Positions 9,901 to 40,000 of a DNA stretch of 64,000 nucleotides are shown piece by piece (position 1 is the first letter of the stretch; each line of letters opens with the position of its first letter). The stretch is from Bugula neritina. Its lineage: Eukaryota; Animalia; Bryozoa. The notes beneath the pieces are model-generated. The model had not been told where the DNA came from, ran no database searches, and saw nothing but the letters and a program-made list of their open reading frames with translations. Both the position numbers and the translations under genes were made by a program. The stretch spans positions 3,625,751 to 3,689,750 of the forward strand of contig OZ037773.1 in NCBI GenBank assembly GCA_964035545.1, in the 5' to 3' direction.

Positions 9901-10730
9901 TCATATCTTACCTTAGCATGGAGGCTGACAATAGATTATTTTTATCAGCGTATTCATATTTGATGGTAAATTTGATTCTTAAGACATGGTAGTCTTCAAA
10001 CCTCCTTCATTTAAATTCTACTCAGCAATAAGCGAAAATACCTTTTTGATGACTCGAAACTTTTTAAGTTCTATACTGAGTAATGAGTATGCTATTAATA
10101 GAACGTTTTTATTAATAGCATACTCAGCATAATGTGTTACGTAATATTCTATGTATGAAAACTACTCAATTTGAATCTCACTTTTCAGTTGATTAGATTG
10201 ACTTTCCCATCACGATTTGAAGAAGGAGAGAGAGTAGATATTGGAGGAACAGAAAACACCAACTCTAAACCCAAAGTTGGTGTAAATGAGGAGGGATCAG
10301 TAATGCCCCTTACTGAAATAAATAACAAGGAAGAGGTTGATGTTCAAGAAGCAGACTTGGAAGGACAAGAAGACGTGACTGCTAGAAATGGTAAGTTAGA
10401 GTTATCTTCCCATTATAGCTGTGAGTTGAAGTTGCCTTTTCTTTATAGTGATGAGTTAGAGTTGCCCCCATTACAATTGTATTACACTTAACTATTACAT
10501 TATGTACTAATAATATACTTTATTTCACAGCCAGCTTCCCCTGGTATAAGAAAGCCATTTACTGGATTTGCGGAGTAGAGAATATGACATCATCATCTCA
10601 CGACAGCGACAAACCCGTTGAGGAAGCAGATATGAGCATAGATGAAGATCCACGCTGGTCAAGATGGACCAACTTTTCTGCTGTAGTGGTGATGATAGCC
10701 GCGGCATTTGTGTGGGGATTTTATGCCTAA
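989..10730 (+). CDS. SLC5A: Sodium/glucose (sodium/solute) cotransporter, SLC5 SGLT-like, tandem copy A; 5'-partial (exon 1 not in window)
   Basis: 14 in-frame GT-AG exons: 989-1057, 4121-4225, 4446-4505, 4720-4824, 5677-5782, 6174-6254, 6373-6516, 7040-7158, 7645-7780, 8214-8472, 8680-8842, 9195-9413, 10189-10390, 10531-10730 (TAA). SLC5 signatures: [84 protein letters not shown]-terminal FVWGFYA. Orthology within SLC5A1/2/4/9/10/11 not resolvable by eye. Confidence 0.95.
3838..3888. repeat. 19-bp tandem repeat x3
   Basis: CATTGCTGTGTTGCGATGT units. Confidence 0.8.
6575..6920. mobile_element. MITE with about 70-bp terminal inverted repeats
   Basis: AGCCTAGGGCCACAC..TTTTCGCATGCGAAA..CACAAGTAGCAAAGGTGTCCACTGTA at left, near-perfect reverse complement at about 6849-6920; flanked by TA (or TAA/TTA); not present in the paralog B intron. 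Confidence 0.9.
7817..8130. repeat. 15-bp minisatellite
   Basis: TCAGYATRTGATGTG, about 21 copies; source of the VSACD/HHILT/MMCQY ORFs. Confidence 0.95.
9460..9531 (-). pseudogene. tRNA-like sequence (Ala/TGC-like, defective anticodon arm) inside LTR
   Basis: Minus strand GTCCCCGTGGTGTAATGGTTAGCACACTTGCTTGCAAGCCGGAGGTCTCGGGTTCAATTCCCGGTGGGGGCA: 7-bp acceptor stem, D and T arms, A box TGGTGTAATGG, B box GGTTCAATTCC, followed by TTTTT; anticodon stem mismatched. Confidence 0.75.
9685..9756 (-). pseudogene. Second tRNA-like copy inside the other LTR
   Basis: Same 72-nt sequence with two substitutions; followed on the minus strand by AAATTATTTTACA. Confidence 0.75.
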
Positions 10731-14247: not shown

Positions 14248-17200
14248 TAAATTGTATTACAAGAACATCTATTACGTAATACCAAAACATACTTTGATCA
14301 TTTTAGGTAGGAGCCTCTCTATTTGCTAGTAACATTGGAAGTAGTCATTTCATTGGACTAGCTGGCTCAGGGGCAGCTTCTGGTATTGCCATATCTGTTT
14401 TTGAGATTAGTGTAAGTAACATATTTTTCAAAACCTTTCCTCACCACCTGCAGAAGTTATATAGTTAGGTTTATAATCTAAGGCTAGATGTCATTGTAGC
14501 TAGATCAATGTAGATATAAAAGGTACTCTCCGCCATAACTTTTCATTTAAACTAGTATAAAATATCTTTTATATATAGAAAACAACTTTCATTCACCAAC
14601 AGTATAACTTGCTATACAACTGCTCTTGGTGTCATCCTTTTTACTACAAAAAGAAGTAACTGCACATATTCAGCAATATGTAGGATTCCACTTTACGCGG
14701 TATTGTTTTGCAGGCTGTGTTCTCTCTCCTACTTCTGGGATGGGTGTTTGTACCAGTCTACATAACCTCAGGGGTAAGAGCAAGTAACTTCTAACAACTT
14801 GTAAGACATAATAATATATTACTGCGAGTTGAATTGGGTTGCTGAAGCTTTAGTTGGCTGGCTTTTAAAAAAATGCTTCAAGTTGGCTAAGTGCTGTGAT
14901 AAACCTATGAAACAGCCATGACTTGCTTCCTGTATATGTATGACCCTCCATTTCTAAATCCCAGCCTAAAGTTGCCCTTTAAACCTGTTATATGCACGAG
15001 TTTATGTTATTGGTAGTTGAGTAGGCAGAGTAATTGTTATAATGCCCAAATATTTGTAGAGATCATTGTGCATAGTGTTGCCATGACAACCTAGTCTAAC
15101 ATTATCAATAAAATAAGGTTGTGACTTTGTGTAATGGTCTATGCGATCTGGTAAGTCTTAGTGATCTTATATAAGGGGTCTCAGTGATTGTATTAGTTCT
15201 CCAGTGACTTGGTTAATTTCAAGTACCTGATGAAATCTTACTTGATAACTTGTAAATCTTGAATTTTAGTAACTTATTGAGGATTTACCAAATCAATCCT
15301 TTTATTTTTGAATATTTGACTTAAGGTGACTTTATAAACTTAGCATTTAACAACTATATATAATGTTTTGATTAAGTTTATTAACAACTAAGTAGAATAT
15401 TTGAATCAAGCCAAGTATTTGGTAGGCTTGAATCTTCATTTAATAATAAAATGCATACAATTTTAGCTTCTCGGTTGAGTTAAATCATCCTTATGTTTTA
15501 GAAAATATGCTATTTAATATTGAAAGAAATCAATAAGTTGTGTAACAGATTATTCTGCTACAGGTAACACTTTATCTATGAAAATATACTTTTGTTTTGC
15601 TGCAGGTAATACTTTTGTTCTGCTGCAGGTTTACACGATGCCAGAGTACTTGAAAAAGAGATTTGGTGGTGAGAGAATTCGGGTGTATCTTGCAGTGTTG
15701 GCCGTCATTATATACGTCTTCACTAAGATATCGGTGGGTATGGGTAGCCATATTGTGGTCACATGTTTATAAGCTAGCTTTCATTTCTTCTTATACTGTG
15801 TGATGATTTGTTCAACAAGCTTATAGAAAGTGTACTCATGGGTGCAGGCTGATTACTAATCGTATAAATACGTCTTAAGATCAAAAATAACATTACTTGC
15901 CTACATTCAAAAATTTTGTTGTTGTTTTAAAAGCTTGAAGTTGCTAAATGTTTGGGATTTAACTTTTTTAATATTTAGCATAATTTAATTTAATTATAAA
16001 ATTGTTTTCAGACTGGCTTGAATCTGAAGACTAAAAACTGCTTGTAAAATGATTTTAAATATTTATTATCACATAAATACAAGTTGAGAAAAATCTTTTT
16101 TTAGAGTATAAACAACTAGAAAATTACATGGTAAAGCTGAGTGAATAAGTGAAAATTTTGATGTGCAGATTCTTTATGGAAATTCTTGTCCTTCACACGG
16201 TTGTAGTATAAAGTTTGAAATTCAATTTTATGTTTGTATTTGATAGCAATAGGGTAAAATATCAGTAGTTTAAAAGATGAATACTAGTAGTTCAATAGCT
16301 GCATACGCGTGTAAACTAGATCACAAGTATGTCAAATCAAGAAATTAATTAATAATTAATTAATAAATTTCCCACAAACATATGTCTTAGACGACAAGTT
16401 TTACCAGTTTATAATGTTGTGATGTGTTGTAGGCAGACCTTTATGCGGGCGGAGTCTTCATTAAACAGAGCATTGGATGGGATATCTGGGGTTCGGTGAC
16501 TGCCCTGCTGATATTAGCTACAGTTTTCACCATAGCAGGTAGAAAGATAGATACAACCTTCTCATGTGTTACAGTAGAAACTAAATAATTGTTATTATAA
16601 GTAGTGGGTTTGTGTATATGAGTGTGTGTGAATTACTGTATAGTTATTATATACAGAATATATTTACTATGCTGTATAATATAATATGATATGATATAAT
16701 ATAATATAATATAGCATAATATAATATAATATAATATATAGTACAACATAATATAATATAATATAATATAGCATAATATAATATAATATGATATAATATA
16801 GCATAATATAATATAATATAATACAATATATAATATAATACAACATATATAATATAATGCAACATAATATAATGCAACATAATATAATATAATAGATAAC
16901 TTGCTGTCATTTGTAGGCGGACTTAGTGCTGTTATCTGGACAGACTTTGTGCAAGTTGTCATCATGATAATTGGAGCTCTGATTCTAATGGCCATCAGTG
17001 AGTTAACATGTGCAGTTGGCACTTTGGAGTTGTTTACCTTTAATTATAATATCTCATTGCTAAAAGCTATAATTTTGTACATGCTATACGCTACTAACTT
17101 CATTTAACTTGAAAGTAAATCTAAAGAAGAAGAAATGAGGGATTCAGTTCCTAATGATTATGACAAACAATGTTGTAATTTTGTTACGATTTTTTTGAAA

Positions 17201-20200
17201 ATTTTTGGTAGATAAGCAGAAATAATGTTGGCAATACAAGTTAGAAATCTTATATAGATGCAATTTCTAAAATAATATTATATAAAACAGATATAACGCA
17301 GTTTTGTAAAAATACTTAAAATTTCGACTGACCCACCATGCAGAGTTTTGTGGATGTAATGTGCTAATAATCTCAACCTGTGTCATAGGGTTATTTACTG
17401 TATGTTACACATTAACAGGTTTCACTAAAATTGGGGGCTATGCCGGACTAGAGGAGAAGTTTCTGGGTCCAGAGGCGTGGCCTAATTTCACTAGACAGTA
17501 TGTGGACATGGTAGAGGCGGGGCAGAATGTGTCCGATCATATGGAGACGTATGCCAAGTGTGGTAAGGGCAGATAATAACTTATAGATTAAAATCTAGAG
17601 ATAATGTTTGACTGAATAAAACCAAAACTGTCATTACCATGATTGTCTATTTATGTTCTCATTGATCCTAGAGAAGTGAAATGTCTGAAATTGTCTCCCC
17701 TTTTCAGTGTTCTATAATACCTACACATTCTGTTACAAGCTGTAGTTAATTTAAGACTTCTCCAGTCTCTCTTGGGTATTATTGTAATTTTATATTGATG
17801 AATATATGCAATCAATAGTTGTTTTCCCAAATATTTAACTCAATTGGAGTTTTAGTAATTTGAAAATATAAATATCCTCAATGATGGTTGTTTGTTATTA
17901 ATGGTAATTAACTTGCTATGTCCCTTTTTATAAAGTATACTACTTATACTAGGTTTAACCAAGAAGAATGCGTTTCACTTGATGAGAAGTCCGAGCGACC
18001 CCAGTTTGCCCTGGACTGGAATCACGTTTGGTTTAGCTATAATTAGCATCTGGTACTGGTGCTCTGACCAGGTAACTCTGATGTAATATTCTGGCTTAGT
18101 TATCCAAGTCTTTTGCAGCCTTTTTAAATCATTGGAAATTACTTGATGTGTTGCATTATTTTGGAGGCAAAAAAAATCGCACTTTGAAAGCAGACTTTAT
18201 AGGGGAATAGGAACCAGCTAACATTTGTGATGTGTAAACTTGTCAAAATGAAACCTACTTTTACCCATTGTTGTCAAATATATCCTTGTGGTGCATACAA
18301 CTCCTTAATGTAGATTTAAAAAAAATGTATGATTTATCACTCGATGATACATAACTTGTTGGTCATTGGAAGGTTTTGGTGATACTAACATACTTTATCA
18401 TAGCATCATTTTATACAGCTGTCTCCTACATGTAAGATAGGTTAACACCTGCAATCACTTGTCATGTTGGCTATTATCTTGTCACTTGTCTACTGCCTTT
18501 TGCTTATTATGACAGGTGATTGTTCAGAGAGCACTTGCTGCTAAAAATGTGACTCACGCCAAAGCTGGTACAGTGCTTGCAGGTTTCCTAAAAATATTTC
18601 CCATGTTTATTATGGTCTTTCCTGGAATGATATCAAGGCTTCTGTTTCCAGGTAAAGTTAAGCACTTTGTTAAGCACTATATCTCAGCAAGTATCGAGTG
18701 ATAACTAAAAGTTCTAGTGACTGAAAATTTACTGAGAGGCCTAAAACAATTGTTTTAGTAAAATGCATATATTATAACTAAATACTAACGGATTTTGATA
18801 TTTAGAACTCTAAAAATATGTTACCACCAGAAAAAATATTACAACTTTTTGACAAATGGTCCCACTGCTTGGCCCACTGTTTCACCAGTAAAACTACCAT
18901 AACATATTCCAATTGTAGACCTTGTAGCCTGTGCAGATCCTGACAGTTGCAAGGAGATTTGTGGGAACCCTGCAGGATGTACCAACATAGCCTACCCCCT
19001 GCTGGTAGTGAAACTCATGCCAAATGGAGCTAGAGGTCTGATGCTGGCTGTTATGATGTCTGCATTGATGTCTTCACTAACTTCAATATTCAACAGTAGC
19101 TCTACAATATTTACTATGGACATCTGGAGACGTCTGAGGAAGAACTCATCTGACATGGAGCTCATGATTGTCGGCAGGTGAAGACAACTCTACTCTATCC
19201 TATATAATAAAATCACATCTGATATAATCTAAAACTAGGGGCAAAGTTGCCATATTTTTTGCTTTTAAGTTACAATTTTTTTTATAGTAGAATAATTGCA
19301 GTTTCAACCATATATGTCATTAAAATATTAAATATTTGATAATAAGTTTGGTATTTGCAGTATGCCCATGATGTATTATATAACTCCCTTGTGAGTTATA
19401 TAATGGAGAACTGAATTATGATTAAAAGAGAGCATGCATCAATGAAACACAATTACCATGTTACTTGAACTTGCTGTCACGTTGCTTATAACATGAATGT
19501 TAAGCTACACTATTTTATTTTATTAGTATACTGTGTCCTATTTTCTAACCAGAAAGTTGTAACTGTCAGTGGTTTTACTCACAGTTTCTTAGCAAAATTC
19601 TTACAGTGCTATAGATTGGAGTTCATATATATAGCACTGTAAGAGTTTCCATTCTGAGTAGCAGCTTGAATATATTTCAAGATGTATTATAGTTGATAAT
19701 TGATAAACAAGGAACTTGAAGATTTACTTTACTTTAAAAGCATTCATGTGGTAAATCTGGTATACTGTAAGTACAGGGAAAGTGCACTGTAAGTATCCTG
19801 TGTGTTATTCTTTATATACTACACCGCAAATGTGAAAACGTCATAATTTTTATTTATTTTACTTTTATTGTTTTATGCAATTAATTTCCTTGTAAAGGTG
19901 TTAATCCTGCAATATATTTATTCTTGTAAGGTGTTTATCCTTGTAGGGTGTTTATCTTCATAGGGTGTTTATCCTCGTAACATATTTTTTATCCTCATAA
20001 GGTGATTATTCAATTGCAGGGTGTTTATCCTAGTAGTTGTGGCCATCAGCATTGCATGGATACCAATAATACAGAATATTTCGGAGTTGTTTCACTACAT
20101 ACAAACCATTCAGTCATTTCTTTCCCCACCCATCTGCGCCGTGTACACTCTAGCAATATTGTGGAAGAGAATCACAGAGCCAGTGAGTGTTGTATGTAGA

Positions 20201-22510
20201 TATTTCAGCTCAACTGTAGTGGTGGAAGTATTACTGTAGAAAGTTGTCTTCTCATAATCAAATGGTCAATCGGTAAGAAACAGACTATAACTTGCCATAT
20301 GCTGCAAATCTACAATAAGTAGTAACTAATTTATTCTTTTAACTACTTTACGGCATCCAACTTCGTGATTCAAAATGCATTTTTAATTAGCATTAAGTCG
20401 AAAGAAATACAATAACTGTTGATCATTTAGTCAAAACTGTTGAGTTTTAGATAATTAGAAAATGTTATTTGGTAATACCTCACAGATGATTGATTAAAAC
20501 TATATTCGAAAATTTAAATTCAACTTTATACTTTTATAGCTTATGGTCCTAATGTATAAGCACCCTTTAGCCTGTGAACTTACAATATTGCCGAAACTAT
20601 TTAGGGTGCTTTCTGGGGTTTAACTATTGGATTGGTGATTGGAATGATCAGGTTTATCTGGGAGTTCAGCTATGGACCAGCGCCCCCTTGTGGTGAGGAA
20701 GATACCCGACACCCTCTCATCGCCAACGTCCACTACCTCCATTTTGGAGTTATGCTACTTTTTATAGTTATACTAATAACTGTTACAGTCAGCTTCCTCA
20801 CTAAGCCTATCGACAGAAAGCACGTGAGTTGTCAAATATCACGCCTAGTAAATAATTCATTTTTATATTAAAAGTTAGCGCTGTGCGTGTGTGTGTGTGT
20901 GTATGTGTGTGTGTGTGCGTGTGCGTGTGCGTGTGCGTGTGCGTGTGCGTGTGCGTGTGCGTGTGTGTGTGGTGATAAAATACATAACAACAGTAAATTT
21001 ATATGTTGATAGTTTTCACTATCAGGTGTCTTTTTGTATACATAATTTGCATACATAAAATTGAAAAAATAACATAGGCTATAGTGTGTATGTTGGTTGT
21101 AAAAGTTCGAGCCGTTTTTGATATTATAATCTGAGCAGGATAGGTACAAGTTTTACACACTAGATGTCTACTAAAATGAAAATAAGAATTTAGAAATCAT
21201 TTTCATGTGTTTTTCTATAGCTGAAAAGGTTGACATTTCAATCCCGATTTGAGAAAGGCGAGAGAATAGAGTTTGGTACCGCAGAACCAGACAGAGAAGT
21301 GAACACATTAGAGGAGGCGAGTTCTGTGATCCCCCTTAATGAAGTGACAGGTGAAAGCAAAGCTGAGACTACAGATGCTGAGGCTATAGATGCGGAGGCT
21401 GCAGCAGATGAAGATGTGGCAACAAGAAATGGTGAGGAGCTGAAAATTCAAACTAATTATTTTAACAAAGTTTAATAATTCATGAATTTTTAGTGAAACT
21501 GCATAAATATTAACATTAGAAACTTTCACTTTAATTATATAATTGATTATTGTAATTCTAGTTGTGTATTTATAACATACTTTTTAGCTTATAGGCTCAT
21601 TTTATACTTGGAGGAAACTTCAAATAGATTTTTAAGTTTGTCCATTTACACTGGCACAAAGTTTGTACAGTTTTCTTTAATGGTGAATTTCAAGTTATTT
21701 GTGTCATTATGAATGTTTAATCTGAATCTGATTTTGATAAACACAGATGGAGGAACATAATGCTTGCTTCTAATTTGTGTCATTGTGTTTGTCGCAATAT
21801 TCTAATGGTAAGGAGCTGTCATTCCTAAGACAAGCAATAGGAGCTGCACAAACAACTGACTAACTATACTGTCTTACCATAAAAGCTTCTGCTATAATAT
21901 AGACTGTTAAATCTAATAGTGTTCTGCCATGAATAGCCCAAGAAAGTCAATCAACCAGTTTTCAAATTTAAAACAGCGTAATCTGGCCAATTTACCTGCA
22001 CTATTTTTATGTAAAAAATTATTGCTAATGTAAATGTAACAGACTACAACATAATATAATAACATTGTAGGGGTTAGAGCATTTGGCTAGTAAACATAGA
22101 GTCATGGGTAAAAGCCCTGATAAAGGCCATTGGTGATGTTAGTAAGAGTATCTAGTCATCATTGCTCCTGTGCCTCATGGTCATACAAATAAGTCTCGTT
22201 TCAAAAAACCCTTTCCATCAGAGGTTTCTTACAGGGATGGTGATATGTATAAACAGTTTATCACACCACAACCGTTATATTATGTCATATTTATATACTT
22301 TATTTCACAGCCAGCTTCCCCTGGTATAAGAAAGCTATTTACTGGATTTGTGGAGTAGAGAATATGACATCATCATCTCACGACAGCGACAAACCTGTTG
22401 AGGCAGCGGATATGAGCATAGATGAAGATCCACGCTGGTCCAGATGGACAAAAGTTGGAGCCGTTGTTATCATGTTGATTACAGTGTTTGTGTGGGGCTT
22501 TTATGCTTGA
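12342..22510 (+). CDS. SLC5A: Sodium/glucose (sodium/solute) cotransporter, SLC5 SGLT-like, tandem copy B, about 692 aa
   Basis: 15 exons: 12342-12443, 13032-13100, 14307-14411, 14714-14773, 15629-15733, 16433-16538, 16917-16997, 17419-17562, 17953-18071, 18516-18651, 18919-19177, 20020-20182, 20605-20823, 21221-21431, 22311-22510 (TGA); 2079 nt, frame intact. Exon lengths equal copy A except exon 14. Begins [34 protein letters not shown]. Confidence 0.95.
14184..14244. repeat. (TA)n microsatellite
   Basis: Pure dinucleotide run. Confidence 0.95.
16676..16893. repeat. (ATAAT)n pentanucleotide repeat
   Basis: Long array; a short version sits at the equivalent position in copy A (6116-6153). 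Confidence 0.9.
20882..20970. repeat. (GT)n/(GTGCGT)n microsatellite
   Basis: Direct inspection. Confidence 0.95.
22066..22244 (+). mobile_element. tRNA-derived SINE, 5'-truncated copy
   Basis: Aligns with copies at 28711 and 58728 (GGGGTTAGAGC, CATTGGTGATGTTAG, ATTGCTCCTGTGCC, CCTTTCCATCAG..ACAGGGAT). Confidence 0.8.
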
Positions 22511-25385: not shown

Positions 25386-28300
25386 ATGGCAAGAGAGAGT
25401 CTAAAAAAGTCAATTACGTTTATTTTGTATCTACAAGGTAAGTTTTGAAGCTTTATAATACTTTTGAAGCCTTTCTGGGGCCTGGTGTTTTTACTATCTC
25501 AAGTTGAATGCACGTTGAATGCACGTATAGATACTAGTTTTGATAAGAATTATTTGCGTTTTCTTTTAATATTATTTTAATAATTCAACATATGAGATTG
25601 CTCGAAAACAACTTATTTTACTTATAAAAATGTTTTATTCTGTTGATGCCTATTTAATTAGTGATTATAATTGGATTAGTGATCATTTGTAAATTATTTG
25701 AATCAAGTAATAGAATTTGTCAATAGGAAGTGACTATATTTTTCAAAAACAGAATATAAATTGATCAGCTAAAACATCAAAGAGTTTTTTGAATTGAATG
25801 TTTTTATTAGTACGGCTGTGTTTTTTGTTGAGCTTTGTTAGAATTAATTTTGACATCATAAGTGAAAGAGTCGAAAGGCCTTGTAGGTTTGATATCTTTT
25901 GCCCTTTACTAAGACTTACTAGTTTTTTGGTGATTTTCTGATTTTAGCAGCACTTCTAATCCAACCGACGCAAGCCAGTGATGAAGAGATCCCAGAAAGT
26001 TCTAGAGAGACTCCAGGAGAAAATGACTCCAGCAATAAATTCTCTAATATGGATTTAGACACCAGAATAAAGGAAACATCAAAAACTATTACACCAGAAA
26101 AAGCAGCAGAATTCTTAGAAGAATTTGGTTACGAGACCGGTGACAGGCGTGGACTAAAGGATGAGAGGCTTTTAATGTTTATATCTCCAGCACTAAAGAA
26201 ATTTCAAAGGCGCATGGAGATACCGGAAACCGGTAAGCATAGGAATAGTTTAGGCAATGTGACAAATTAACATGCAATATAAAATAGATTTTTGTTTTAC
26301 GCTTTCACTTCGCATATTGTTTCAAATACTTGGGCTATAAAAGTGTTAGGACGCATGTAACGGTAAATGCAGACCTAAGGCTAATCAGATGCTGGATGAG
26401 ATATCTTCCTAACTATCTATTCACCATCTAATGGACATTTAATCTTTATGATAATCCCTTTAATGATAATGTTTACCTTGTTCAGCATTACCGTTTGACA
26501 CCCTTTCACTCTTAACCCACTACTGCGTAAACTGTGCTAGCTGATGTCATCAATATCTGAAGAAGCATTGCCTCTAAATGTATCTCTAATGATTTGTAAC
26601 TCTTCATTTGACGTATTTCACACCTTGTACAATACGGCGGTTGATATTGGAATTGTTAAGTTTCTTCCTAAACTTGGTTGCTAAGCATCTCTAAGTTGTG
26701 ACAGAGAAAAACTCTCTGATATCAGAAAAAAAAATTTTAAAATTCTCAAGTTTCATACATTTTCTAACACGTTGATTTTTTAAAATTGAGTTTGTAGCAA
26801 TCTGTTCCTTTCTAAAAAGAAATTAAGAAAAATTTACAAAGTGTGATGCCAGAAATTTTCAGACGAGCAAGCACATAAGATAACAGATAACAGAAGCCCG
26901 AAAACTGCTAAATATTTTAATTTTCTGTTTAATCTTTTTAAACCGATTAAATTTTTTCTCATAAAAATTCTGTAAAAAAGACTATGCACAGAGGTTAAAA
27001 ACCATAAAAATTTTATTATAATGCCATTATGTGTTACTAGTTATAATAATAAAGTGTTAACTGATGTGGCAACTCAATCCTTAAGCTAACACTAAAGTGG
27101 TTTAACAAAGGCACTTTGTTATGGCTGCTAATATAGAAGTCTTATAAAACGGTGGATATAATGTAATTAAAGCTCTTAGAAGAGTAGCCATGGTTTAGGG
27201 GTTGGAGCACTAATTTAGTAAAGACCATTGGTGATGTTAGGAAGAGCATCCAGACGTATATAATTGCTCCTTTGCCACAATAGTGAAAAAGTCCTTAGTC
27301 CATCAGGAGTTCTCGCAGGGGTAGTGTGAGCTTTTATAGGTTGTAGGGGGGGGGGGGGAGGGTGAGGTTTTTATAGTCAGTTATTCGGTGAAATCTACCA
27401 CAAGTTTTCACAGTGTTTCCATGCATTAAATAAGCATCTACATTTATTATAGCTAATTAGGTGACCCCTAAAAACTTTACTTACTGCTAAATGTATATGA
27501 AGTCTAAAAGTACTATGAAAGTTTTCAAGTACTGCGAGAAAATGATTTAATTGCTGTTTCTAACAACAACTTGTAAGTCTCCAATCAGTTATTTGTTTAT
27601 TAAAATCAACTGGTATAATAAGCTGTGAGTTAGATATGATATATGCATATGTGTATACATATACATATAACAATGCTATTTTAGAATTCGTGCTATCTGT
27701 ACTCTTCCAGGGTTACTTGATATAAGCCAATCAGCACAAGTCTATTAATCACCCGTGAAAGAAATGCCATTGTTCCATGTTTGATGGGTTGACAGGAGTA
27801 CATTGTCTGAGAACTTGCATCATCTAGTGCATAAGCCTCAGCAATTTAACTTCTTTATATTCTATCAGCTTTCAAAATTTAAGGATGCAGAAAAATGCTT
27901 AAATGATGAGTCTTTTTAGCAGGCCGTCATGGGTTTAGTTAAAAAAACTGTTTCATTATTTATCAGGTGAACTGGATGAGAGAACCAAGTATGAAATGTC
28001 CGTCCCAAGATGTGCTTTCCCAGACTACATGACGGAGAATACTGCTAGATCAAAGAGATACATTTTAGGTAAACACGATTTCATAATAAAAAAATTTGTT
28101 CCAATAAAAAAGACTTGTTTTTTTCAGTTGTGTTAAAAAGTTTGAGGATATAGAGAAGTTTTATTTGATCAACAAGTATTTAACGTAAATATTAATCTAT
28201 AGCTAAAGCATTAGTGGTCTGCTTTTACCTGTCAGGTAGTATGGATTTTATTCAAGTTTCACAATAATTACAAAAACCACTAACACTATAATATATTATA

Positions 28301-31300
28301 TAGTCTCTAGTTGATATACCTCAGTTTGCTAATAGACTGTTTAATCTCACATCTGCAGATTTGAAATGAATTAATGTTAAATTTACTCTCTGTTGGCTCT
28401 CTATCAAGAAGCACCCATTACAACCTTACCAAATTGATAATCCACTAAGCTTGAGAAGTTAACATTACACTAATCTATACTTCCTTATTAGATATCATTG
28501 AATGAACTCACTTCTGCTGAACTCAACTCTGTGATAGTTGTAGATCTCGCGGGCTGGTTGTATCTTCCAAGACATATTTTAGCCATTTTCTGAGGCAACT
28601 CTGATTGCAATCACAAGCAATATTAGCCTCTAATTTTTAAATTATTGCTGGACATGTAAAAATGCATTATAAATAATTATTTGATTCATGATGTTAAATA
28701 TTGAGAGTTCAGGGAGCAGTCGTGGTCTAGGGGTTAGAGTGTTTGCCTAGTAAGCACGAAGGTCATGGGTTCGAGCCCTGACAAAGTCCATTGGTAATGT
28801 TAGGAAGAGCATCCAGTCATAATTGCTCCTGTGCCTCATCTAAATAAGTTCTCAGCCCGATTTAACAAAAACCCTTTCCATCAGAGTGTTTCTCACAGGG
28901 ATGATGACTTTCGTTCATTAAATATCAAGATCGAGTTAGGGATTTGATATTTCACGACCTAATAGTTTCTACTTTGTACAGCAAGCCACATGCCTCTGTG
29001 ATGCCGTATTGTAGGGAACTCTCGCTGGACTGACGGTGACTTGCCTTTGAGAGTTGTCTTCACTAGTCACAGTCGGCTCATGGGACGAGAAGCCCAGGAG
29101 CGAGCATTCATGGAGGCAGCTAATGTAAGTGTTGACTATAAACATTTCATGATTGGGTGTAAAAATATCATAATTTGCCGTTGAACTAGAACAATTTTGA
29201 GTAACAAGCTGTTCAAAGCAAAAACCAGATTTATGGAGCAAAAACTTTAATTTAATTCTTTTAATTAATGAAAAATGAAATTATTTGCTCCAGTAAGTTC
29301 AAGGCCACTCTTTGTTACTGAAGGCAGTGGGCAGAGTGTGTACTTACAGACTGAATGAATATACGTGTTGGCTATAGCTATATATTATAGAATGTACACA
29401 AGGTGCACTCACCAGGTCAAATAAAGCGTTTAATGCTCATAACTTTGAGATTAACTATTATCCAGATTGATAACATGTGATTTGTTTGAAGCGATAACCA
29501 ATTGTAGCATCTTCAAACAAATGCATTTCTCATATCATCTTAGGATTAGGCAGTTAGCCTTTTTATTAGCCTTATGCTATACAAGAACAAAAATCATTAT
29601 AAATACATAACTTGTATATGCTTGACAACTGATTGGAACAGTGATAATGTAGTTATTATGTGCTTGGGGCACTTGGTAGGCTCAAATGTACCTTTCTAAT
29701 TAGGGAGCCAGGATGTGATGACAGTTACGCACAACGCAAGGACATAATTGTGCTTTAATGTTAGAAACTTACTAATTTAAATTCATAAATGAAGTGGCCA
29801 TAGAGATTTGAGATTAGCTCCATGCAGCTCCTATATAGCCCTGTGTATTTGTTGTCCCAACTTCAATACAGCCCCATGTGTTTTTTGTCTCAACTTCAAT
29901 ACAGCCCCGTGTGTTCATTGTCCCAATTCCAATGCAGCCCCATGTATTTGTTGTCCCAACTCATATATAGCCCCATGTATTTTTTGTCCCTACTCTAATA
30001 CATCCCCATGCACTTGTTGCCCCAATTCCTGTACAAATCCTTATCAGTATTTGTTCCAGCTACTGCTGCTGCTGTCTTACACATTGCATTCACAAAACAA
30101 CAGCATAAAAGTTGATCAAATTCAAATTTTAAATTACTCGAACATTTACCACACAAACGTAGTTTGAACGCATTAAAATTTCATCAAATACAAATGCAAG
30201 CAAGTGGAAGCTCATACATGTTCACACACCTTCCTCTCTAAACATACTGTGTGCTTTAACAATGAGTCATTAAAGAGAGATATAAATTATTGGATTATAG
30301 CAATACTTACCTATTAGTATCACTACAAATAGTGAACCTGTGAAAGACTTTGTTGAATAACTCCTCAAAACGCGAAAACCTGTAAGAATACTCACCAGGA
30401 ATATGCTTGTAAACAAACCTTCTCCTGTTTCAGAGCTGGGCGGAAGTGTCCGGGCTGAGGTTTGTTAGAGGAACTCTCCAGAATGCCAACATCAGAATTG
30501 GCTTCACTCATCACGATGGACCGTGGGGAGTTCTGGGTAAAGCTTGGTTTCCCAGAGTTGGCAGGATTGAATTTGAAAATGGAGAAAACTGGGTAGACAA
30601 AATTGCCGTTAGGGGAGCATTTTCAAACAGTAAGCCGATATATGTTTGAATGATATGCTTCACCTGCATATAGCTTAATATCTAGTTTATATTGCATGTA
30701 AAAGACTGTGCCCCTGTTGCCAAAAGGCATTAGTATGCTGCCTTCACAGCAAAGAACTATAGCTAATTTACTAAACTTGGTTACATAGAAGATTATTTTT
30801 ATTATTGTTATGCCAATTAAGCACTGCACTGAGCTGTAATTGTATTGCTAGAGACCAAATGTGAATGGCATTAATATAACTTGTATTATAATATGACTCA
30901 CAGCTATTGTTTGATTCTATACACTGGATGTTGTTTTAGCAGGACCACTAGGTATGAGATGACAACTTCTTCTTTTTCCATGCATGTATTCCCAATTCTG
31001 CATTATCAACTATAACCAATGCATTTCCATCTAACCCTTTTTCATACCTTTCCTTTCATTGTTACGTACAGTAATATAATGTATTATAACTATTCTTTGT
31101 TACATTTATTAATAATTATGCGCATTTTTTGTTTATTGATACATTTGTAAAATGTCATCCCTATTTTATATTATGTTGCTGGATGATAATATATTATTAA
31201 GTTAAATATACAATTGCTCTAAACTTATCATTTCTATATTCCCCTGTTTTCCAACACAATCCACTCCTTGCATCCAAACCACCTTCACCTAACCATGGAA

Positions 31301-34300
31301 TTCTTCATTCCCAAATTTATCATTGTACTATTACCAGATATATCTCAAAGTTAACAAACAGTGTTGCTTATCTAAGCATAAATATTCAATGAGCAACAAC
31401 ATGCATACTTGCAGCATTTTACCAGGAAGGTGTTATACCACTATATGTTATATAGTGTTATATATTATACCACTCAAGTATATATACCAGTATACGTAAT
31501 AGTATAACAACGTTTCTAAAAAAGATACAAACTAATATTTTACAATTTGCTTTCAGGCCTCTCTTTCTACTCTGTTGCCATGCATGAATTGGGTCACGCA
31601 CTGGGAATATCGCACTCGAATGTTAGAGACGCCATAATGCACAGTCAGTATCAGCGAGACATCCTCCGTCTTACAGACGATGACATCAGAGCTATCACAA
31701 GGCTATATGGTCCGGCTAGACCAACACAACCACCTCAAACTCCACCTCCACCTCCCCCCTGTGAGTCTACCAGTTATTTAGTACATGCATTTAGTGTTGA
31801 TCTTTACCTAGAAGGCTGTGTAGTTTTAAATGTAATATAAGAAAATGCAATTTATATTCTGTAGAATTCTGTTTGTTATGGCTTACAAAATACTGTAAGT
31901 TCATATTGAAAGTTTATAAAAAATCAATTAATATAAATTGATGTTGTGAATCAATTGTGTATTGTGTTGTGTTGTGTGTGTATTGTGTTTTGTGTTATTT
32001 ATTGTGTTGTATATTGTGCTGTGTATTATGTTGTCTATTGTGCTGTTGTTTATTGTGCTGTGTATTGTGCTTTGTATTGTGTTGTATATTTCATTGTATA
32101 TTAGACTGTGTATTCACTGCACATTATTATACGGTTGAATGCATAAATATGTTTTAAAATTATGACACCCTAGAAAAAGTAAGGTGCAGTTTGCATGGTG
32201 CGTACTTGGGCAATAGTGAAGTTATACCTGTAGGAATTGTGCTATTAACTGTTGGTTAAACCTACTCTAGTCTACAACAAGTAACTCATGATCATCAAAG
32301 TGCTCACAGCAAAAACTTTACATAAGAAACATTCTAGAGTGTTCCCAGGCTTGTCCAGAATATTATGGAGTAGTTAAGAAGTATATTCTAAGTCTTATTA
32401 CTATCTGAAACACTAATCCAGTAACTGCATCCTCAGCTTACCTTATTTATTCAAACCTGCAGAGGAAGAAATTTCTATAATCCCAGCTTTACATTCAGCT
32501 GATTCCCTTGTAACTTCTTCTAGATTAGTCAACACTAGGTGAATAGTAAACTAGGTGAATAGCATACTAAATTAATAGTAAACTAGGTGAATAGTAAACT
32601 AGGTGAATAGTATACTAAATTAATAGTATACTAGGTGAATGATATACTAGGTAAATGGTAGACTAGGTGAATGGTAGACTAGGTGAATGATACACTAGGT
32701 GAATGGTAAACTAGGTGAATAGTATACTAGGTGAATGATATATTAGGTAAATGGTAGACTAGGTGAATGATATACTAGGTGAATGGTAGACTAGGTGAAT
32801 GATATACTAGGTGAATGATATACTAGGTGAATGATGTACTAGGTGAATGATGTACTAGATGAATGATATACTAGGTGAATGGTATACTAGGTGACTAGGT
32901 AGACTAGGCGAAACAGCAAAAAACATTTCTTAAATCAAAACTTTCATTTTTTTCGGGTGTGAGGTTAGAAAGAATAACACAGTGCAACTACAAAGTTTGG
33001 CTATTTAGCAAAAATCTAAGTCTTTTTAACGCAACAAGTTTTACTATTATAGTTATGAATGTGGTTGAGGACTTGATAGCTAAGTCTAAAGATTATTTGA
33101 GATACCTGATTTCACCTTCAAACGAGTTTTAATTCATACACATTGTGATATATAAACATTTTAATGTAAACATAAATAATGTACTTCAGCTTATGAAAGA
33201 GTTGAAATAATTATATACAAGTCATGATGAAAGTGCCAAGGCTAATAACTGACAGAGAGGGAAAGTGGGGGGTTGTAGGTACGTGCCTGACTGGCACAAG
33301 CCCTACTTGACATATAATTTATAAAGCATTGTTAACCTTCTAACATTTATAATGCAGGAAATTTGCACCCTTGAATGTGTCACAAATAAAGTAGATAATG
33401 TTCATTATTTTCTTATGCTAATTCATCTCTGCAGCTTTTTACTTTATTGTGTTGGAAGAGCAACAGCTATAACTCATTGTTTTGTGGTGGTAATGAGATG
33501 AGTGTAACAAATGCCTAATTGTTGTTTCCATAGTAACCATAACAATATAGCAAATTTAATGTTAGTCTGTGTTTCAGAAATAATTCTAACTGCTATATTA
33601 TTTCCACATCATTCACTACGAATTCTCATTGCTTCGAATTATGTGAACGGAGTTTTCATGCACATACTATAGAACTACTGTAGGAGGCTGAAAAGAATGT
33701 TATTGTACATGGATTATTCTATTATCGCATTACATACATATATTTTGAAGCCTGAGAGTACTAGAAGATCATGTGTCATGTTTAGGGGTTTGAGACCATA
33801 GCTCTATGATTGTGTCTATTCAAATGTTTTGCCTTTCTATAGGATTGGAAGATTATGCTAATTTTAATAATATTATTATAATCTAAAATGCAATTGTTCA
33901 CCTTACAAATTGTGGTGTTCACTAATGACTGAATATATGTAACAATAGCCTCTCTCACTCAAAGTAACAATGCTATTATATCTTAATATGATGGACAACT
34001 TAAATTTTTGCCTAATGATTTAAGTTTACATCAGAAATCTAATACTTTGTGGTGAAAGATGTATGCATGTTTTGTTACAGCACCTAGGACACCTCCAATT
34101 AAGGTCAACAACTCAAAAATAATGAGAAGCAAAGTGAAAAGTCAACGACAACGACAGAAAGCTAAGGCAAGCCGCCAAAAGAAGAAAAGCAAGAGCTCTA
34201 ACAGGCGAAAGCCGTCAAATAAAAACAGAAGTAGGTCAGGCAACCGAAACAAGTCACAGAAACAACAGCGAAAAGGAAAGAGCAGCAATAGTAGGAATGG

Positions 34301-34430
34301 GTCAAGGACAAAAAGAAAAAACAGCAGTTCGAGCAGAAAACGAAGCAGCAATAATAAAAAGAAGCAACAAAAAGGCAATAAGCGAAAGCCATCGTCAAAG
34401 AAAGGCTCTAGAAGACGAAGTGTGGGATGA
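25386..34430 (+). CDS. MMP: Matrix metalloproteinase (matrixin, M10A), about 436 aa, no hemopexin domain seen, basic C-terminal tail
   Basis: Exons 25386-25437, 25948-26232, 27967-28068, 29015-29124, 30434-30629, candidate microexon 30940-30951, 31557-31760, 34081-34430. Signal-like MARESLKKSITFILYLQAALLIQPTQA; prodomain (EFLEEFGY..ALKKFQ..ETGELD); cysteine switch PRCAFPD; furin site RSKR; zinc motif HELGHALGISH; Met-turn AIMH; DDIRAITRLYG; Pro-rich hinge; K/R/S tail. First and last exons assigned by splice phase. Confidence 0.9.
26516..26994. mobile_element. Possible piggyBac-like MITE relic
   Basis: TTAA|CCCACTACTGCGTA ... TATGCACAGAGG|TTAA; weak terminal symmetry only. Confidence 0.3.
27181..27338 (+). 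mobile_element. tRNA-derived SINE, internally deleted copy
   Basis: Shares A-box head, GATGTTAGGAAGAGCATCCAG core and TCCATCAGG..CAGGG tail with the other copies; B-box region missing. Confidence 0.75.
28711..28908 (+). mobile_element. tRNA-derived SINE, near full length
   Basis: A box TGGTCTAGGGG, B box GGTTCGAGCCC, conserved body TGTTAGGAAGAGCATCCAGTCATAATTGCTCCTGTGCC. Confidence 0.85.
29815..30032. repeat. 33-bp minisatellite, about 6.5 copies
   Basis: ATACAGCCCCATGTATTTGTTGTCCCAACTTCA-like units; explains the Cys-rich ORF 29808-30167. Confidence 0.9.
31955..32100. repeat. Degenerate (TGTAT/TGTGT)n low-complexity repeat
   Basis: Direct inspection. Confidence 0.8.
32534..32910. repeat. 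16-bp minisatellite
   Basis: ACTAGGTGAATGATAT-like units, more than 20 copies. Confidence 0.95.
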
Positions 34431-35892
34431 GTACAATGCATTGAGTTAGGAAGCAAGTTGTTATTTATATGCAATTGTATTGAAGTGTTGTAATATTTTA
34501 AGAGCCATCTACCGTCTGTTATTCAAATTGCTATTGTATTTGTTGTATTGTTTTAGGTTTTTAGGAAACACATTAATTTTTTATAGAGCCAGTACCATCC
34601 AGTTATGTGTTTTAATTTATCTTTTTATAGACAACAAAGGCTAATCTCAAGTTATGAGTCATTAAATCTTACATTGGAGTAATCAAGTTAAAAGTAAATT
34701 ATATATATATAATATATATAATATATATATAATATAGTTAAATTGATCATGTAGTTTCAATACAAATTTATTCAATACATTCTATTACATTATGCTATAT
34801 TGCATAATGATTGTCTATAATATGTGCATTACTATTTATTGCTGCTTATTATCTATTTCAGCATTTTGTTTATAAACCGACATGAAGTTGTGGATAGTAT
34901 TTAATATTCGACTCAATAATTTTGTTGACGATTTCCAATATTGAGACATTAAATTTTCTTGTAAAAGGATGATTTGTATTGTTTATATTAGCATGCAATC
35001 TATACACAATAGTTATACTTATATAGGTAAAGCAAATGTTAAAGCTCATAATGTATTAATTGAATAGTGCAAATTGATGATTAATAAATATTTTTTCTAC
35101 AAACTAGCATTTTTATTTACTGTACATACTTTCTTCATTATTATAGCAAATCTACAAGCAACACATTTAGGGAACTCGTTTTTCAGAGTTCATTTGTCCT
35201 CATTTGTAAATATTTATTAGTTTAAGGCAATAAAAACATATAAATTAGCAGTAGAATTATGAAAAAGTTAAAAACTAGAAATATTGAGAAAGTACTAAAT
35301 TAAGTAAAATGATCCATGATATGCATTCATTGACATGTGAGAAATTTAAAAAAAAGGAAATTTTGTTCTTTGAAAAACATCTAACAACTTATCTTTTGTT
35401 TTTACTTCATTTGTACTGAAAATGATACAGGTAGACCAAGTCATTCACCAAGTAGTAATAAATGCACAATGTACTGCACAATGTAGCTAGCACCAGGACT
35501 AGATTAGCAAAGAGATGATAACTTCCCAGCTACTCTATATATTAATACTGTGACAACACTATTAATACTGTTAGCTACAGAAATTATTAAAATACAAAAA
35601 ATAGTAAAAAGAAATATCAAAATATAATCACATAATGTAACATGAGTTAGTATTGTACCATATTACATATTACAATGCAACATATTGAGAGCTGGCTACC
35701 ATGAAATAAATATAACAACATAATTTCTCTTGGTTATGTTTAGGTCCTCAGGAAATATGGGTTATAGTCCTTTAGTAATAACTAACAATCTTCTAGTAAC
35801 TTGACTAGTAACTACAAGAGAATAAATAACATTTAGTATATTTGTGAAAAAGCATGCAGTATAACAAAGCTGTGTACATGGCAGGCAGTTTA

Positions 35893-36366
35893 TACAGTGA
35901 CAGCTGATACAGTGACAGCTGATACGGTGACAGCCGATATGGTGACAGCTGATACAGTGACAAGTGATACAGTGACAGTTGATACAGTGACAAGTGATAC
36001 GGTGACAGCTGATACGGTGACAGCCGATATGGTGACAGCTGATACAGTGACAAGTGATACGGTGACAGCCGATACGGTGACAGCTGATACAGTGACAGGT
36101 GATACAGTGACAGGTGATACAGTGACAGGTGATACAGTGACAGCTGATACAGTGACAGGTGATACGGTGACAGGTGATACGGTGACAGGTGATACAGTGA
36201 CAGGTGATACAGTGACAGCTGATACAGTGACAGGTGATACGGTGACAGGTGATACAGTGACAGGTGATACAGTGACAGCTGATACAGTGACAGCCGATAT
36301 GGTGACAGTTTATACAGTGACAGCTGATACAGTGACAGCTGACACAGTGACAGCCGATACGGTGAC
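35893..36366. repeat. 15-bp minisatellite
   Basis: GTGACAGSTGATACR, about 31 copies; source of the TVTAD and HCIxC ORFs. Confidence 0.95.
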
Positions 36367-36659
36367 CAATCAATCTAATTATGTAATTCATGGACTATGT
36401 AGCTATCAGTTAGATATGACATAAATTGATAACAAAGAAAGCAAGTATAACTTCTTTTCTGTTTAAGCTATTCAACTACCTACTAATCTCACCAACTACT
36501 GCGCATTAGCCATAATCAATAAAAACCCTCCAAATTGATTTCATTACAAATTGAACTCCCTGTATCAGTGGTTTATTAAAATACTACCAAAAATAAAATA
36601 ACTTATTAGCAAATTACAGTTTCCTCTAATATGCAGCTGAGCTCAAAGCCCATTGCTAC

Positions 36660-37062
36660 GTCAGTAACTACTGTATTACACAAAGTAATTAACTCACAAC
36701 AGTGACTGCTGCACTATACACAGTAGCATATTGACTACAGTAACTGCTGTACTATACACAGTAACTTATCAATTACTGTAACTACTCTACTATACACAGT
36801 AACTTATCAATTACTGTAACTGCTCTACTATACACAGTAACTACTGTAACTACTGTACTATACACAGTAATTTATCAACTACTGTAACTGCTGTACTACA
36901 CACAGTAACTACTGTAAATGCTGTACTATACACAGTAACTACTGTAACTGCTGTACTATACACAGTAACTACTGTAACTACTGTACTATACACAGCTACT
37001 TATCAACTACTGTAACTGCTGTACTATGCACAGTAACTACTGTAACTGCTGTACTATACACT
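36660..37062. repeat. Compound 28/37-bp minisatellite
   Basis: ACTACTGTAACTGCTGTACTATACACAGTA units with optional CTTATCA insert. Confidence 0.9.
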
Positions 37063-37083
37063 ATAGACAAGTGTTAGACTCAC

Positions 37084-40000
37084 CTGAGCTAACTTGGCAG
37101 GTATATCAGTTATCATATTGAAATGGTCTCGGTCTGGACATTCATACACACTGACTGGTACAGATCTACACTCAAGGAGCTACAATCACAAAAAAGTGAA
37201 CATGCTTTCTTGGAGTTGTCCTTTCACAAAACTGAATCATTTCAACTCCAGTATCCTGTATGGTCCAAAATAAAGTTATGGAAAATGATAAAAGGTAGAA
37301 ATAAAACAATGTAATTATTCTAAGAACATAAGAGAATGATAAGTGACAATACATTAGGCAATAACAAGCGAATCGATGGAAAAAGAAACAGCAGTTTTTA
37401 AAACTCTAGATATTGCAGGGAGTGCAGCCGAACAGCAAACTCTGCGAGAAGAGGGTCAAAGGTCACTAATAAGTAATTTAATGGAAGACTTCTTACAGGA
37501 GACTGAGAGAATAATTTAAGGCTAGCAATGATCAAACTACGCGAGTAGGTGCAGGGTAGTACCTTAGCAAAATCTTTAGATTGTGAGTGGAAAGCTGGGC
37601 TTTCTTCAGCTGCATAACTAACCAGGTTGTAGGCTAAGTTCTCAACAACTATAGCCTGAGATTTCAGCAAAAGAGATGGGCTCAGTTTTTCAGCAACCGA
37701 TCTGAAATTGTAAAAACATATGCCACAATATCAAAAAGAGGTTAAATTTGTGTGAAACTGTTTCAACATAATTAAAAGATCCTACTCACACATTAGCAAG
37801 ACTGAGTCCAGGAATATTTATGGAAGTGTTTAGAAGCGGGGTGATATCATATACTCCCCCAAGCAAGGCAACTCCTGCAAGTGAGAAACTAAGGCTACAA
37901 CTTCTAAACTGCTTGAACAAAATCTATTAATTTAGAAAAAAACCAATGTGAACAAATAATTCTACCATAATTCTTAGAATAAAAACACTAACTTACAAAA
38001 CTTCCCAAAAAAATCTATTACAAGTAACTTGTCAAATAGAACAAAAATTGTAAGGTTTAAAAAGCAAGTTCCTTGTATGAAGTTGATTTAATAAACACCT
38101 ATCACATTTCTCTAGTCATCTGATTACTCTCTTAACTAAAATTCAGTTTGCAACTGAACTGTTTGTGAATAACTGTGCAGTTTACAAACTTGTAAGTTGC
38201 CTTCTCTCTTTATGAGATATTTCAGAGAGAAGATAAATCTCAAAAGACTTTCACTTCCACTGCAGAGTTATGAGTCAGAAATAAGTATCTAACTGACCTT
38301 TCACCAATGACCTGGCATTGACATTGAGCTCTGGAGATATTATTGTCATGGCAACCAAATGTGCACCAGCACTATGTCCACAGAGAATAATAGACCTAGC
38401 AAAGTCAGAAAAAGGCGTATGTGCACTAATTTGTGTAAATGTACACTTAGTAAATAACCATACATGTCACAATAGATCACAATTATCATTCTTGTCAAAA
38501 ATTAGCAAATTAGTCCGACTTCCGCTTACCTTATGTTATGCTGAGAGGTGAAATCGGCAAGACAATTCACTGCCCGTACTGCTTGCGCTGTAATGTCAGA
38601 CAAGGTCATTTGTATGTCATCATTGTAACCAATAGCTGCGTACATGTGACCAGCATTGAGAACTGGTGTAGCAGCAACCATTCCATCAGATTTATAACTG
38701 CAACAGATAATGCTCTAAATTATCATAATTGACAAATAAAATGAAAGTTTATTTAAAAATGCCTCGACCCAGGACACCATTTTGCATAAAATCTTCATTT
38801 ATTAAGAAAAAATTAAAGAATCAAACTTTTTAGCAAAGCATATATTATGCTTTCTAAGTGTAAGTTTTAGTCAGTATTCAAAATACAAATTTCAAAGTTG
38901 TTCAGAAGTTACTCGTGCGATTTTAAAATCATTTGAATATTTTTTGAAACAATGTTTGTCTGTTGAACATTTTAATAAGCCAAACGTACAGAAGAAAAGC
39001 TACTTTGTAACAGAACAATGTCAAGTATACACCACATTGATATAGCGAGTATACGCTGATATACCGAGTATACACCACATTGATTAGCCAGTATACACCA
39101 TATTGATATAGCGGTTGGCCCACCTTCCATCCTGCCAGTATCCGCCATGGATGTACGCAAACAAAGACATCTTTCTAGATTTTTCTTCAGGATGAATAAT
39201 CACAACTTTCTCATTTATTTTACTTCCATATTCTATAGTAGACATGGAGTTTTCATATTGACGCAGGCATTCCGCACCAACTGCAATGAAATTAAAACCA
39301 AGCATATGGCTTTTCGTTTGTTTCAAAAACATATAGGCTGGTATGCATGATTATATGAACTGTGGTGTGTTAGCAGTTACAGCTGTGTGGTAATTGTAGA
39401 AATCACTGAAGTACCAGCAGATGATCAACAACTGCTATTGATTGGGTTAGAATTTTTCAGAGTTTTTCTGAAACTAACCATAAAAAAGAAAACGTTCCAT
39501 TAGCAAAAGTGCAAATTTGACTGAAGTTATTTCTTCTTTATTGTTTGGAATAAAGAAGACAACTTTTATAAAAAGTGCTGATTTTGTAAAACTTATCAAG
39601 TAGAAGTTATTTTCTCAATAAGGGTTAACATTTCTTCACTAACCTGAACGCCATAATTTGCAAAACCAATAAAGCATTGATACTTTAGTTTTTAGAATTG
39701 TTATCATGTGCATTTATAGTAACCATGGTGAAGTATATTTTATGGCTAATCTAGCAACATGTAACACATTCACTCACTTTCATTGGCACGCTGACAGTAA
39801 TCTTCAATTACTGCTGATCGAGTTTTGATTGGACGAGAGTGGGAAGGCCATCTACTAGGACTATACAGATAATCTGCCTCCTGTAAAATAATCCGCCATG
39901 ATTACACAGACAATTGCTTTTAGATCTCAAATTTGAAAAATAAAATCGACAATTAGCACAGAGAAAAAGTGTGTAATGCTAGATAGCAGAAGTTGGTGAT

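Follow-up and report, generated by a model that had tools for sequence, protein, structure and literature searches.

Introduction

Targeting of matrix metalloproteinases (MMPs) to their substrates usually depends on hemopexin, fibronectin, transmembrane or glycosylphosphatidylinositol (GPI) modules, and the C-terminal architecture of invertebrate MMPs is already known to be very plastic. In this study, we closely examined a stretch of 64,000 nucleotides (nt) from chromosome 9 of Bugula neritina (positions 3625751 to 3689750; here called the window). On its plus strand, two sodium:solute symporter genes in tandem (PF00474) are followed downstream by an MMP gene. On balance, the gene appears to consist of seven coding exons, the last of which (positions 34081 to 34430 of the window) would encode a strongly basic tail free of acidic residues.

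The predicted protein has several features in common with enzymes of the MMP11/MMP28 type and with the matrilysins MMP7 and MMP26, namely, a signal peptide, a cysteine-switch propeptide, an R-x-K-R motif before the catalytic domain, the HExxHxxGxxH zinc site and a Met-turn. MMP11 and MMP28 carry a four-blade hemopexin domain, whereas the matrilysins end after the catalytic domain. The Bugula MMP lacks hemopexin, as the matrilysins do, but it would continue into a proline hinge and a polybasic, acid-free tail of about 115 residues. It further differs from these enzymes by a shorter S-loop and by the replacement of structural-zinc ligands.

Basic C termini are known from other secreted proteins. 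The long isoforms of VEGF-A and PDGF as well as extracellular superoxide dismutase (SOD) are retained by such C termini on heparan or chondroitin sulfate, from which they are released in a regulated manner. Class-3 semaphorins also possess basic C termini, and binding of Sema3A to glycosaminoglycans (GAGs) has been described (PMC8465649). Like the Bugula tail, these segments are basic, disordered C termini of secreted proteins with an internal R-x-K/R-R site. They are, however, only 15 to 50 residues long, conserved and located behind folded domains, whereas the Bugula tail has about 115 residues, belongs to a protease and has no detectable relatives. The link is a functional analogy and not homology. 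The sequence hallmarks of a GAG-binding tail are nevertheless present: a C-terminal basic cluster on a predicted secreted protein, Cardin-Weintraub motifs and an internal convertase site.

In a preliminary description of the window, the tail was called protamine-like. The name suits its composition, since protamine-like sperm nuclear basic proteins and histone H1 tails likewise have about 40% lysine plus arginine, much serine and no acidic residues. It does not suit the protein as a whole. Protamines, which are very arginine-rich, and the K/R-rich protamine-like (PL) type are small, stand-alone nuclear proteins expressed in the male germ line. True protamines have more than 50% arginine, compared to 17% in the tail, which is also rich in asparagine and glutamine and comes without the globular domain of H1. 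The tail is best explained as an exon of a zymogen gene, i.e., as a predicted part of a protein built for secretion, and neither the protein searches nor the ESM Atlas revealed sequence similarity to anything.

A candidate terminal exon behind the catalytic exons

The last exon with catalytic sequence, exon 6 (31557 to 31760), ends in phase 1 at the donor CCT|GTGAGT without having reached a stop codon. If left unspliced, it would be read for 26 more codons up to a stop at position 31840. We compared this segment with two genomic open reading frames (ORFs) from very close relatives, P0001 and its cluster mate P0151 (JGI, Logan data), which show 2 changes in 60 exon 6 residues relative to the window. 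Past position 31760, P0151 carries 7 changes in the 26 read-through residues, and P0001 loses the frame after ten (Fisher p=0.0027). The low rate of change within the exon and the high rate or frameshift beyond it indicate that constraint stops at the predicted donor, and a further exon is therefore needed. Judging from the residues, the Glu-to-Lys change at the second read-through codon would correspond to a G-to-A exchange at intron position +3 (GTGAGT to GTAAGT); both versions match the donor consensus. No AATAAA or ATTAAA hexamer occurs in the 1.16 kb following the read-through stop, and the first poly(A)-signal-like hexamer is an ATTAAA at 34661 to 34666 on the plus strand, 231 nt past the stop codon of the tail.

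Between positions 31790 and 37400, other AG dinucleotides preceded by a pyrimidine tract open only 0 to 24 codons in the required phase, and the region beyond 35.7 kb is occupied by minisatellites, followed by a gene that is probably encoded on the minus strand. Since no other acceptor before the satellites and the next gene opens more than 24 codons, the segment from 34081 to 34430 is the only credible partner of the donor at 31760. Its acceptor at 34080 reads ttttgttacag|CA, with CTAAT branch-point-like motifs about 35 to 65 nt upstream. The canonical donor and acceptor had been recognized correctly in the preliminary description, which had also proposed 34081 to 34430 as terminal exon. Of this proposal, it holds that exon 6 must splice on and that no other credible phase-compatible exon is available, while the 31760^34081 junction is one that we infer; from the sequence features listed here, this junction, and with it the exon assignment, is likely. 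The intervening intron 6 (31761 to 34080; 2320 nt) harbors minisatellites at 31954 to 32114 and 32534 to 32912 and no domain-coding segment.

Translation of the candidate terminal exon (34081 to 34430, plus strand) yields a serine at the junction, formed by the T of position 31760 and the CA of 34081 to 34082, followed by 115 codons (34083 to 34427) and a TGA stop codon (34428 to 34430). The 115 codons comprise 27 lysines, 20 arginines, 25 serines, 13 asparagines, 9 glutamines, 6 glycines and 5 prolines; with the junction serine, the segment has 116 residues and 26 serines. Asp, Glu, Phe, Trp, Tyr, Leu and Cys are absent, and only 6 of the 115 residues are aliphatic. The counts given at the outset (27 Lys, 20 Arg, no Asp or Glu, about 116 residues) were thus accurate. 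Lysine and arginine together account for 41% of the tail (arginine alone for 17%), resulting in a net charge of about +47 and an isoelectric point of 12. The tail opens with P-R-T-P-P and so prolongs the proline hinge across the junction. It harbors 16 overlapping dibasic pairs, a single proprotein-convertase consensus of the R-x-K/R-R type (RTKR, 34305 to 34316) and, purely as sequence features, one XBBXBX and one XBBBXXBX Cardin-Weintraub motif. AlphaFold2 modeled an isolated helix at tail residues 10 to 35 and the remainder with low confidence (predicted template modeling score, pTM, 0.27), a prediction that fits a disordered polycation. With a net charge of +47 and almost no hydrophobic residues, the tail cannot fold into a domain.

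Several properties of the DNA itself point to a coding function of this island. Its T content is 9.7%, compared to 39 to 42% in both flanks, and the shift coincides with the acceptor on one side and the stop codon on the other. The three-base periodicity (chi-square p=6e-5) is stronger than in all 22 intron stretches tested, and when the island was shuffled with its composition preserved, the frame set by the acceptor remained open in no more than 0.46% of trials. Third-position composition and the codons chosen for K, R, S, N and Q are close to the expectation for this mix of amino acids from 1042 reference codons taken from the symporter and MMP exons of the window. Within the 64 kb, the island is the sole open segment of at least 50 amino acids that is both basic and nearly acid-free. 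An origin from a transposable element or repeat was ruled out: the island is not a tandem repeat and is single-copy in the 216-Mb genome at the protein and the DNA level, with other DNA matches restricted to the TA microsatellite downstream. We also rejected an alternative forward frame of 103 codons, which encodes a mixed-charge sequence, as it is closed by a stop codon 18 codons behind the single good acceptor, AGs inside the island are not preceded by a pyrimidine tract, and no Pfam match was obtained.

Search for relatives of the tail

A number of observations weigh against a tail-bearing MMP, and they concern the reading frame, the search results and the evolution of the C terminus. Across the island, a second forward frame has 103 open codons and the reverse strand 126; purine-rich DNA has few stops, which makes an open frame less telling in this case than it normally would be, and phase compatibility by itself is a one-in-three event. 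In a library of 1.84 billion proteins queried with exon 6, no protein joins this exon to anything else or contains the tail; the matches above 60% identity are short genomic ORFs only, with no full-length or transcript-derived protein among them. Word-indexed protein searches were blank for the whole tail, for its 80-residue core and for the ORF on the opposite strand, which was included in case gene callers had chosen that strand. No relative of the tail was found in the ESM Atlas, and no second copy in the 216-Mb genome of B. neritina itself. Metagenome contigs from JGI, searched with the locus and with a wobble-degenerate DNA pattern, also yielded no tail relative, although these blanks weigh little, as near genomes were possibly excluded. 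In addition, orthologues from other species with 70 to 77% identity (P0002, P0004, P0006, P0013 and P0017) have no proline hinge, and from this it follows that the C-terminal end is young or unstable. Finally, a function of the tail is proposed purely by analogy.

In several of these orthologues, the LYG motif is directly followed by G-K-K or G-K-W, residues that may result from reading through a G|GTAAG donor. The intron position after the catalytic domain may be old, whereas hinge and tail look young.

Other basic-tailed MMPs, for which a search of related taxa had been suggested, did not emerge: among the 147 nearest MMP representatives with the zinc motif, no comparable basic tail free of acidic residues occurs, and a few have basic linkers preceding hemopexin. 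Likewise, a non-exhaustive search of the literature turned up no description of an MMP that ends in this way.

Catalytic part of the gene

The upstream exons were read from the DNA of the window and searched one by one. They identify the gene as a genuine furin-type MMP of family M10A. All internal junctions are canonical GT/AG, and the phases are consistent throughout the gene. Exon 6, described above for its donor, contains the zinc site HELGHALGISH, the Met-turn (AIMH, at the usual spacing after the zinc motif) and the end of the catalytic domain, followed by a proline-rich hinge of 16 residues, and it matches PF00413 (Peptidase_M10) with E=6e-16 and 59 bits at a cut-off of 24. Further upstream, exon 5 (30434 to 30629; donor A|GTAAGC, phase 1) encodes the middle of the catalytic domain and also matches PF00413, while exon 4 (29015 to 29124; donor AAT|GTAAGT, phase 0) encodes its start.

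Exon 3 (27967 to 28068; donor G|GTAAAC, phase 1) carries the cysteine switch PRCAFPD, which corresponds to the PRCGxPD consensus with Gly replaced by Ala. The R-x-K/R-R motif of the furin-activatable MMP subgroup follows 13 residues after the switch as RSKR, immediately before YIL, where cleavage is predicted. Exon 2 (25948 to 26232; phase 1 in and out, donor G|GTAAGC) completes the signal peptide and encodes the propeptide, which has a PG_binding_1-like fold; its match to PF01471 (PG_binding_1) is weak and below the cut-off (E=0.014). For exon 1 (25798 to 25861), only a candidate can be given, which begins with an ATG and a hydrophobic stretch and has no homology support. Its 3' end is uncertain, with phase-1 GT donors possible at 25820, 25862 and 25883, and the computed hydropathy of the strongly hydrophobic N terminus is 2.2 to 2.7. 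The sequence following ATG 25798 is probably a signal peptide. Together, the hydrophobic N terminus, the cysteine switch and the furin site indicate a secreted zymogen.

Alignment of exon 5 with a canonical MMP (P0009) revealed an 8-residue deletion in the S-loop that removes a ligand segment. In addition, the His of the LAH motif is replaced by Lys and that of the HFD motif by Glu, while the catalytic HExxHxxGxxH motif is intact. According to this alignment, the catalytic domain is devoid of most ligands of the second (structural) zinc and has lost this site. The structural zinc and calcium sites are typical of matrixins and not essential for membership in the family.

Hemopexin and C-terminal ends of other MMPs in the genome

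A six-frame search of the whole genome with the hemopexin profile PF00045 gave no match at the locus even at E<=10. The same search detected hemopexin behind the catalytic exons of four other MMPs, at distances from a few hundred bases to 2.6 kb, and is hence sensitive enough to reveal the domain. In intron 6 (2.3 kb), ten open segments were also without Pfam match. These searches ruled out that hemopexin or another domain is concealed within the intron or farther downstream, bearing out the earlier observation that the intron contains no hemopexin exon, and the gene lacks the four-blade C-terminal hemopexin of the archetypal MMP. The further notion that the tail replaces hemopexin holds as far as the absence of the domain is concerned; given how variable the MMP C termini of this genome are, the tail is one more variant and no singular departure from the family.

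About 20 MMP loci are present in the genome, none of which is closely related to the gene described here (best value, 46% identity in exon 6). The catalytic motifs of these paralogues are alike, but their C-terminal ends consist of hemopexin exons (four loci), a stop after the catalytic domain or a long mixed-charge linker that leads into another C-terminal region, and none has this tail. The closest paralogue is located on chromosome 3 near 26.48 Mb (L001:2315-3523; 46% identity in exon 6). Within a single exon, the end of its catalytic domain runs directly into about 350 mixed-charge and Ser/Thr-rich, disordered residues that include a polybasic patch of 16 residues. By analogy, this patch makes the tail plausible in this genome. 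A common origin of the tail and this polybasic linker was considered and discarded, as there is no significant similarity.

Two side observations concern these loci. The extension of the closest paralogue closes in a hydrophobic stretch, which may be the beginning of another domain. A cluster of minimal MMPs on chromosome 3 (24.585 to 24.599 Mb; L008 and L013) has stops two to five codons past the catalytic domain, with the endings ..IYC, ..VYC and ..MFG, so that matrilysin-like forms coexist with the tailed MMP in the same genome.

Proposed function and alternative explanations

The product is, with somewhat more confidence than doubt, a secreted, furin-activated MMP that ends in what would be, by analogy with the basic C termini described above, a disordered polycationic tether for polyanionic matrix. 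It would enter the secretory pathway via its hydrophobic N terminus and be kept latent by the PRCAFPD cysteine switch until a furin-type convertase cuts at the RSKR motif and activates it. The mature enzyme would then consist of a catalytic domain of roughly 150 to 160 residues, the short proline-rich hinge and the tail of about 115 residues. The tail would take the place of the hemopexin domain, transmembrane segment or GPI anchor by which other MMPs are localized, and its charge would keep the protease on polyanionic matrix such as sulfated glycans, acid mucopolysaccharides or acidic skeletal-matrix proteins. Trimming by convertases or other proteases at RTKR and the dibasic pairs could free the enzyme again. 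Tethering to polyanions combined with convertase trimming is the most reasonable functional idea that the analogy offers. The tail, as predicted, is a plausible variant of a well-known enzyme family; if the proposal is true, an electrostatic, disordered tether is another solution to the problem of MMP localization, with a gain that is limited in scope to one gene in one species complex.

A bolder version of this proposal, which we consider rather doubtful, is that the exon is young and lineage restricted, perhaps derived from purine-rich noncoding DNA, that it provided the MMP with a polycationic tether of 115 residues instead of a folded exosite domain, and that convertase cleavage of this tether at RTKR or dibasic sites toggles the MMP between a matrix-bound and a diffusible state, a mode of localization undescribed for the family. 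The tail may also exemplify a coding exon that arose recently.

Among the explanations that separate the island from an MMP tether, an independent small gene is improbable. The island would in this case encode a basic protein of 102 to 123 residues, e.g., a nucleic acid-binding or protamine-like protein, transcribed from its own promoter (ATG 34059) or produced by spliced-leader trans-splicing at the 34080 acceptor with initiation at ATG 34122, and the last part of the MMP would be either a tiny exon that escaped notice or the read-through. There is indeed an ORF of 123 codons that begins with ATG, and an in-frame ATG lies 41 nt past the acceptor. However, the compositional island begins at the acceptor and not at ATG 34059, and the 22 nt between the two form a T-rich, polypyrimidine-like tract. 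The MMP would be left without a credible last exon, with no poly(A) hexamer past its read-through stop, while the proline-rich start of the exon carries on the hinge. Neither the genome itself nor the protein searches or the ESM Atlas yielded a homologue of such a protein.

It is quite improbable that the island is noncoding, purine-rich DNA with a chance open frame and that the MMP is a minimal, matrilysin-like enzyme with a very short terminal exon or the 26-codon read-through. T-poor DNA is poor in stops, and two forward frames and one reverse frame are long and open here; neither the protein searches nor the JGI metagenome contigs contained tail relatives, and true minimal MMPs that stop right after the catalytic domain do occur in the genome. 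Against this stand the rarity of an open acceptor-set frame among the shuffles (0.46%), the strong codon periodicity, the coding-like codon use and boundaries that coincide with a canonical acceptor and a stop codon. Moreover, the read-through changes in the manner of an intron, with a frameshift in one relative, and a conserved proline hinge that leads nowhere would be odd. The read-through was also considered as a GPI signal; this was rejected on the basis of charged residues within the hydrophobic stretch, the intron-like rate of change and the frameshift.

Very unlikely is a real tail exon with an intracellular or peptide-generating role, i.e., a nuclear localization signal (NLS) in a signal-less isoform or a cationic antimicrobial precursor cut at dibasic sites: the K/R density would satisfy any NLS rule, and 16 dibasic pairs, one RTKR and the cationic helix modeled by AlphaFold2 at tail residues 10 to 35 are present, but the hydrophobic N terminus, cysteine switch and furin site mark a secreted zymogen, a transcript start at ATG 26049 is without any support, and a tail with no aromatic residues or Leu and 6 aliphatic ones is not amphipathic in the way that membrane-active peptides are. 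The ideas of a protamine, an antimicrobial precursor or an NLS are best treated as speculation.

Genomic neighborhood

The two tandem copies of an SLC5-type symporter gene upstream of the MMP gene are located at 4648 to 10727 and 15524 to 22507 on the plus strand. Both are multi-exon genes that share some nearly identical exons, and their matching exons hit PF00474 with E=1e-28 and 1e-26. Downstream of the candidate tail exon, a probable convergent gene is located at 37175 to 39350 on the minus strand. Its exon at 39087 to 39350 contains an HGGYW-type motif and shows a weak match to kynurenine formamidase (PDB 4e11, E=0.014), and the other open segments are without Pfam match.

Minisatellites with units of 12 to 16 nt are found at 7800 to 8140, 31954 to 32114, 32534 to 32912, 35762 to 36424, 36803 to 37074 and 51394 to 51921. 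Many of them lack stops in more than one frame and can be mistaken for long ORFs, and two of them are located inside the last MMP intron. In addition, GC-rich intronic stretches in the MMP gene (28804 to 28944) and in the second symporter gene (22146 to 22250) encode similar peptides with an IIAPVPH... motif and may be copies of a short interspersed element.

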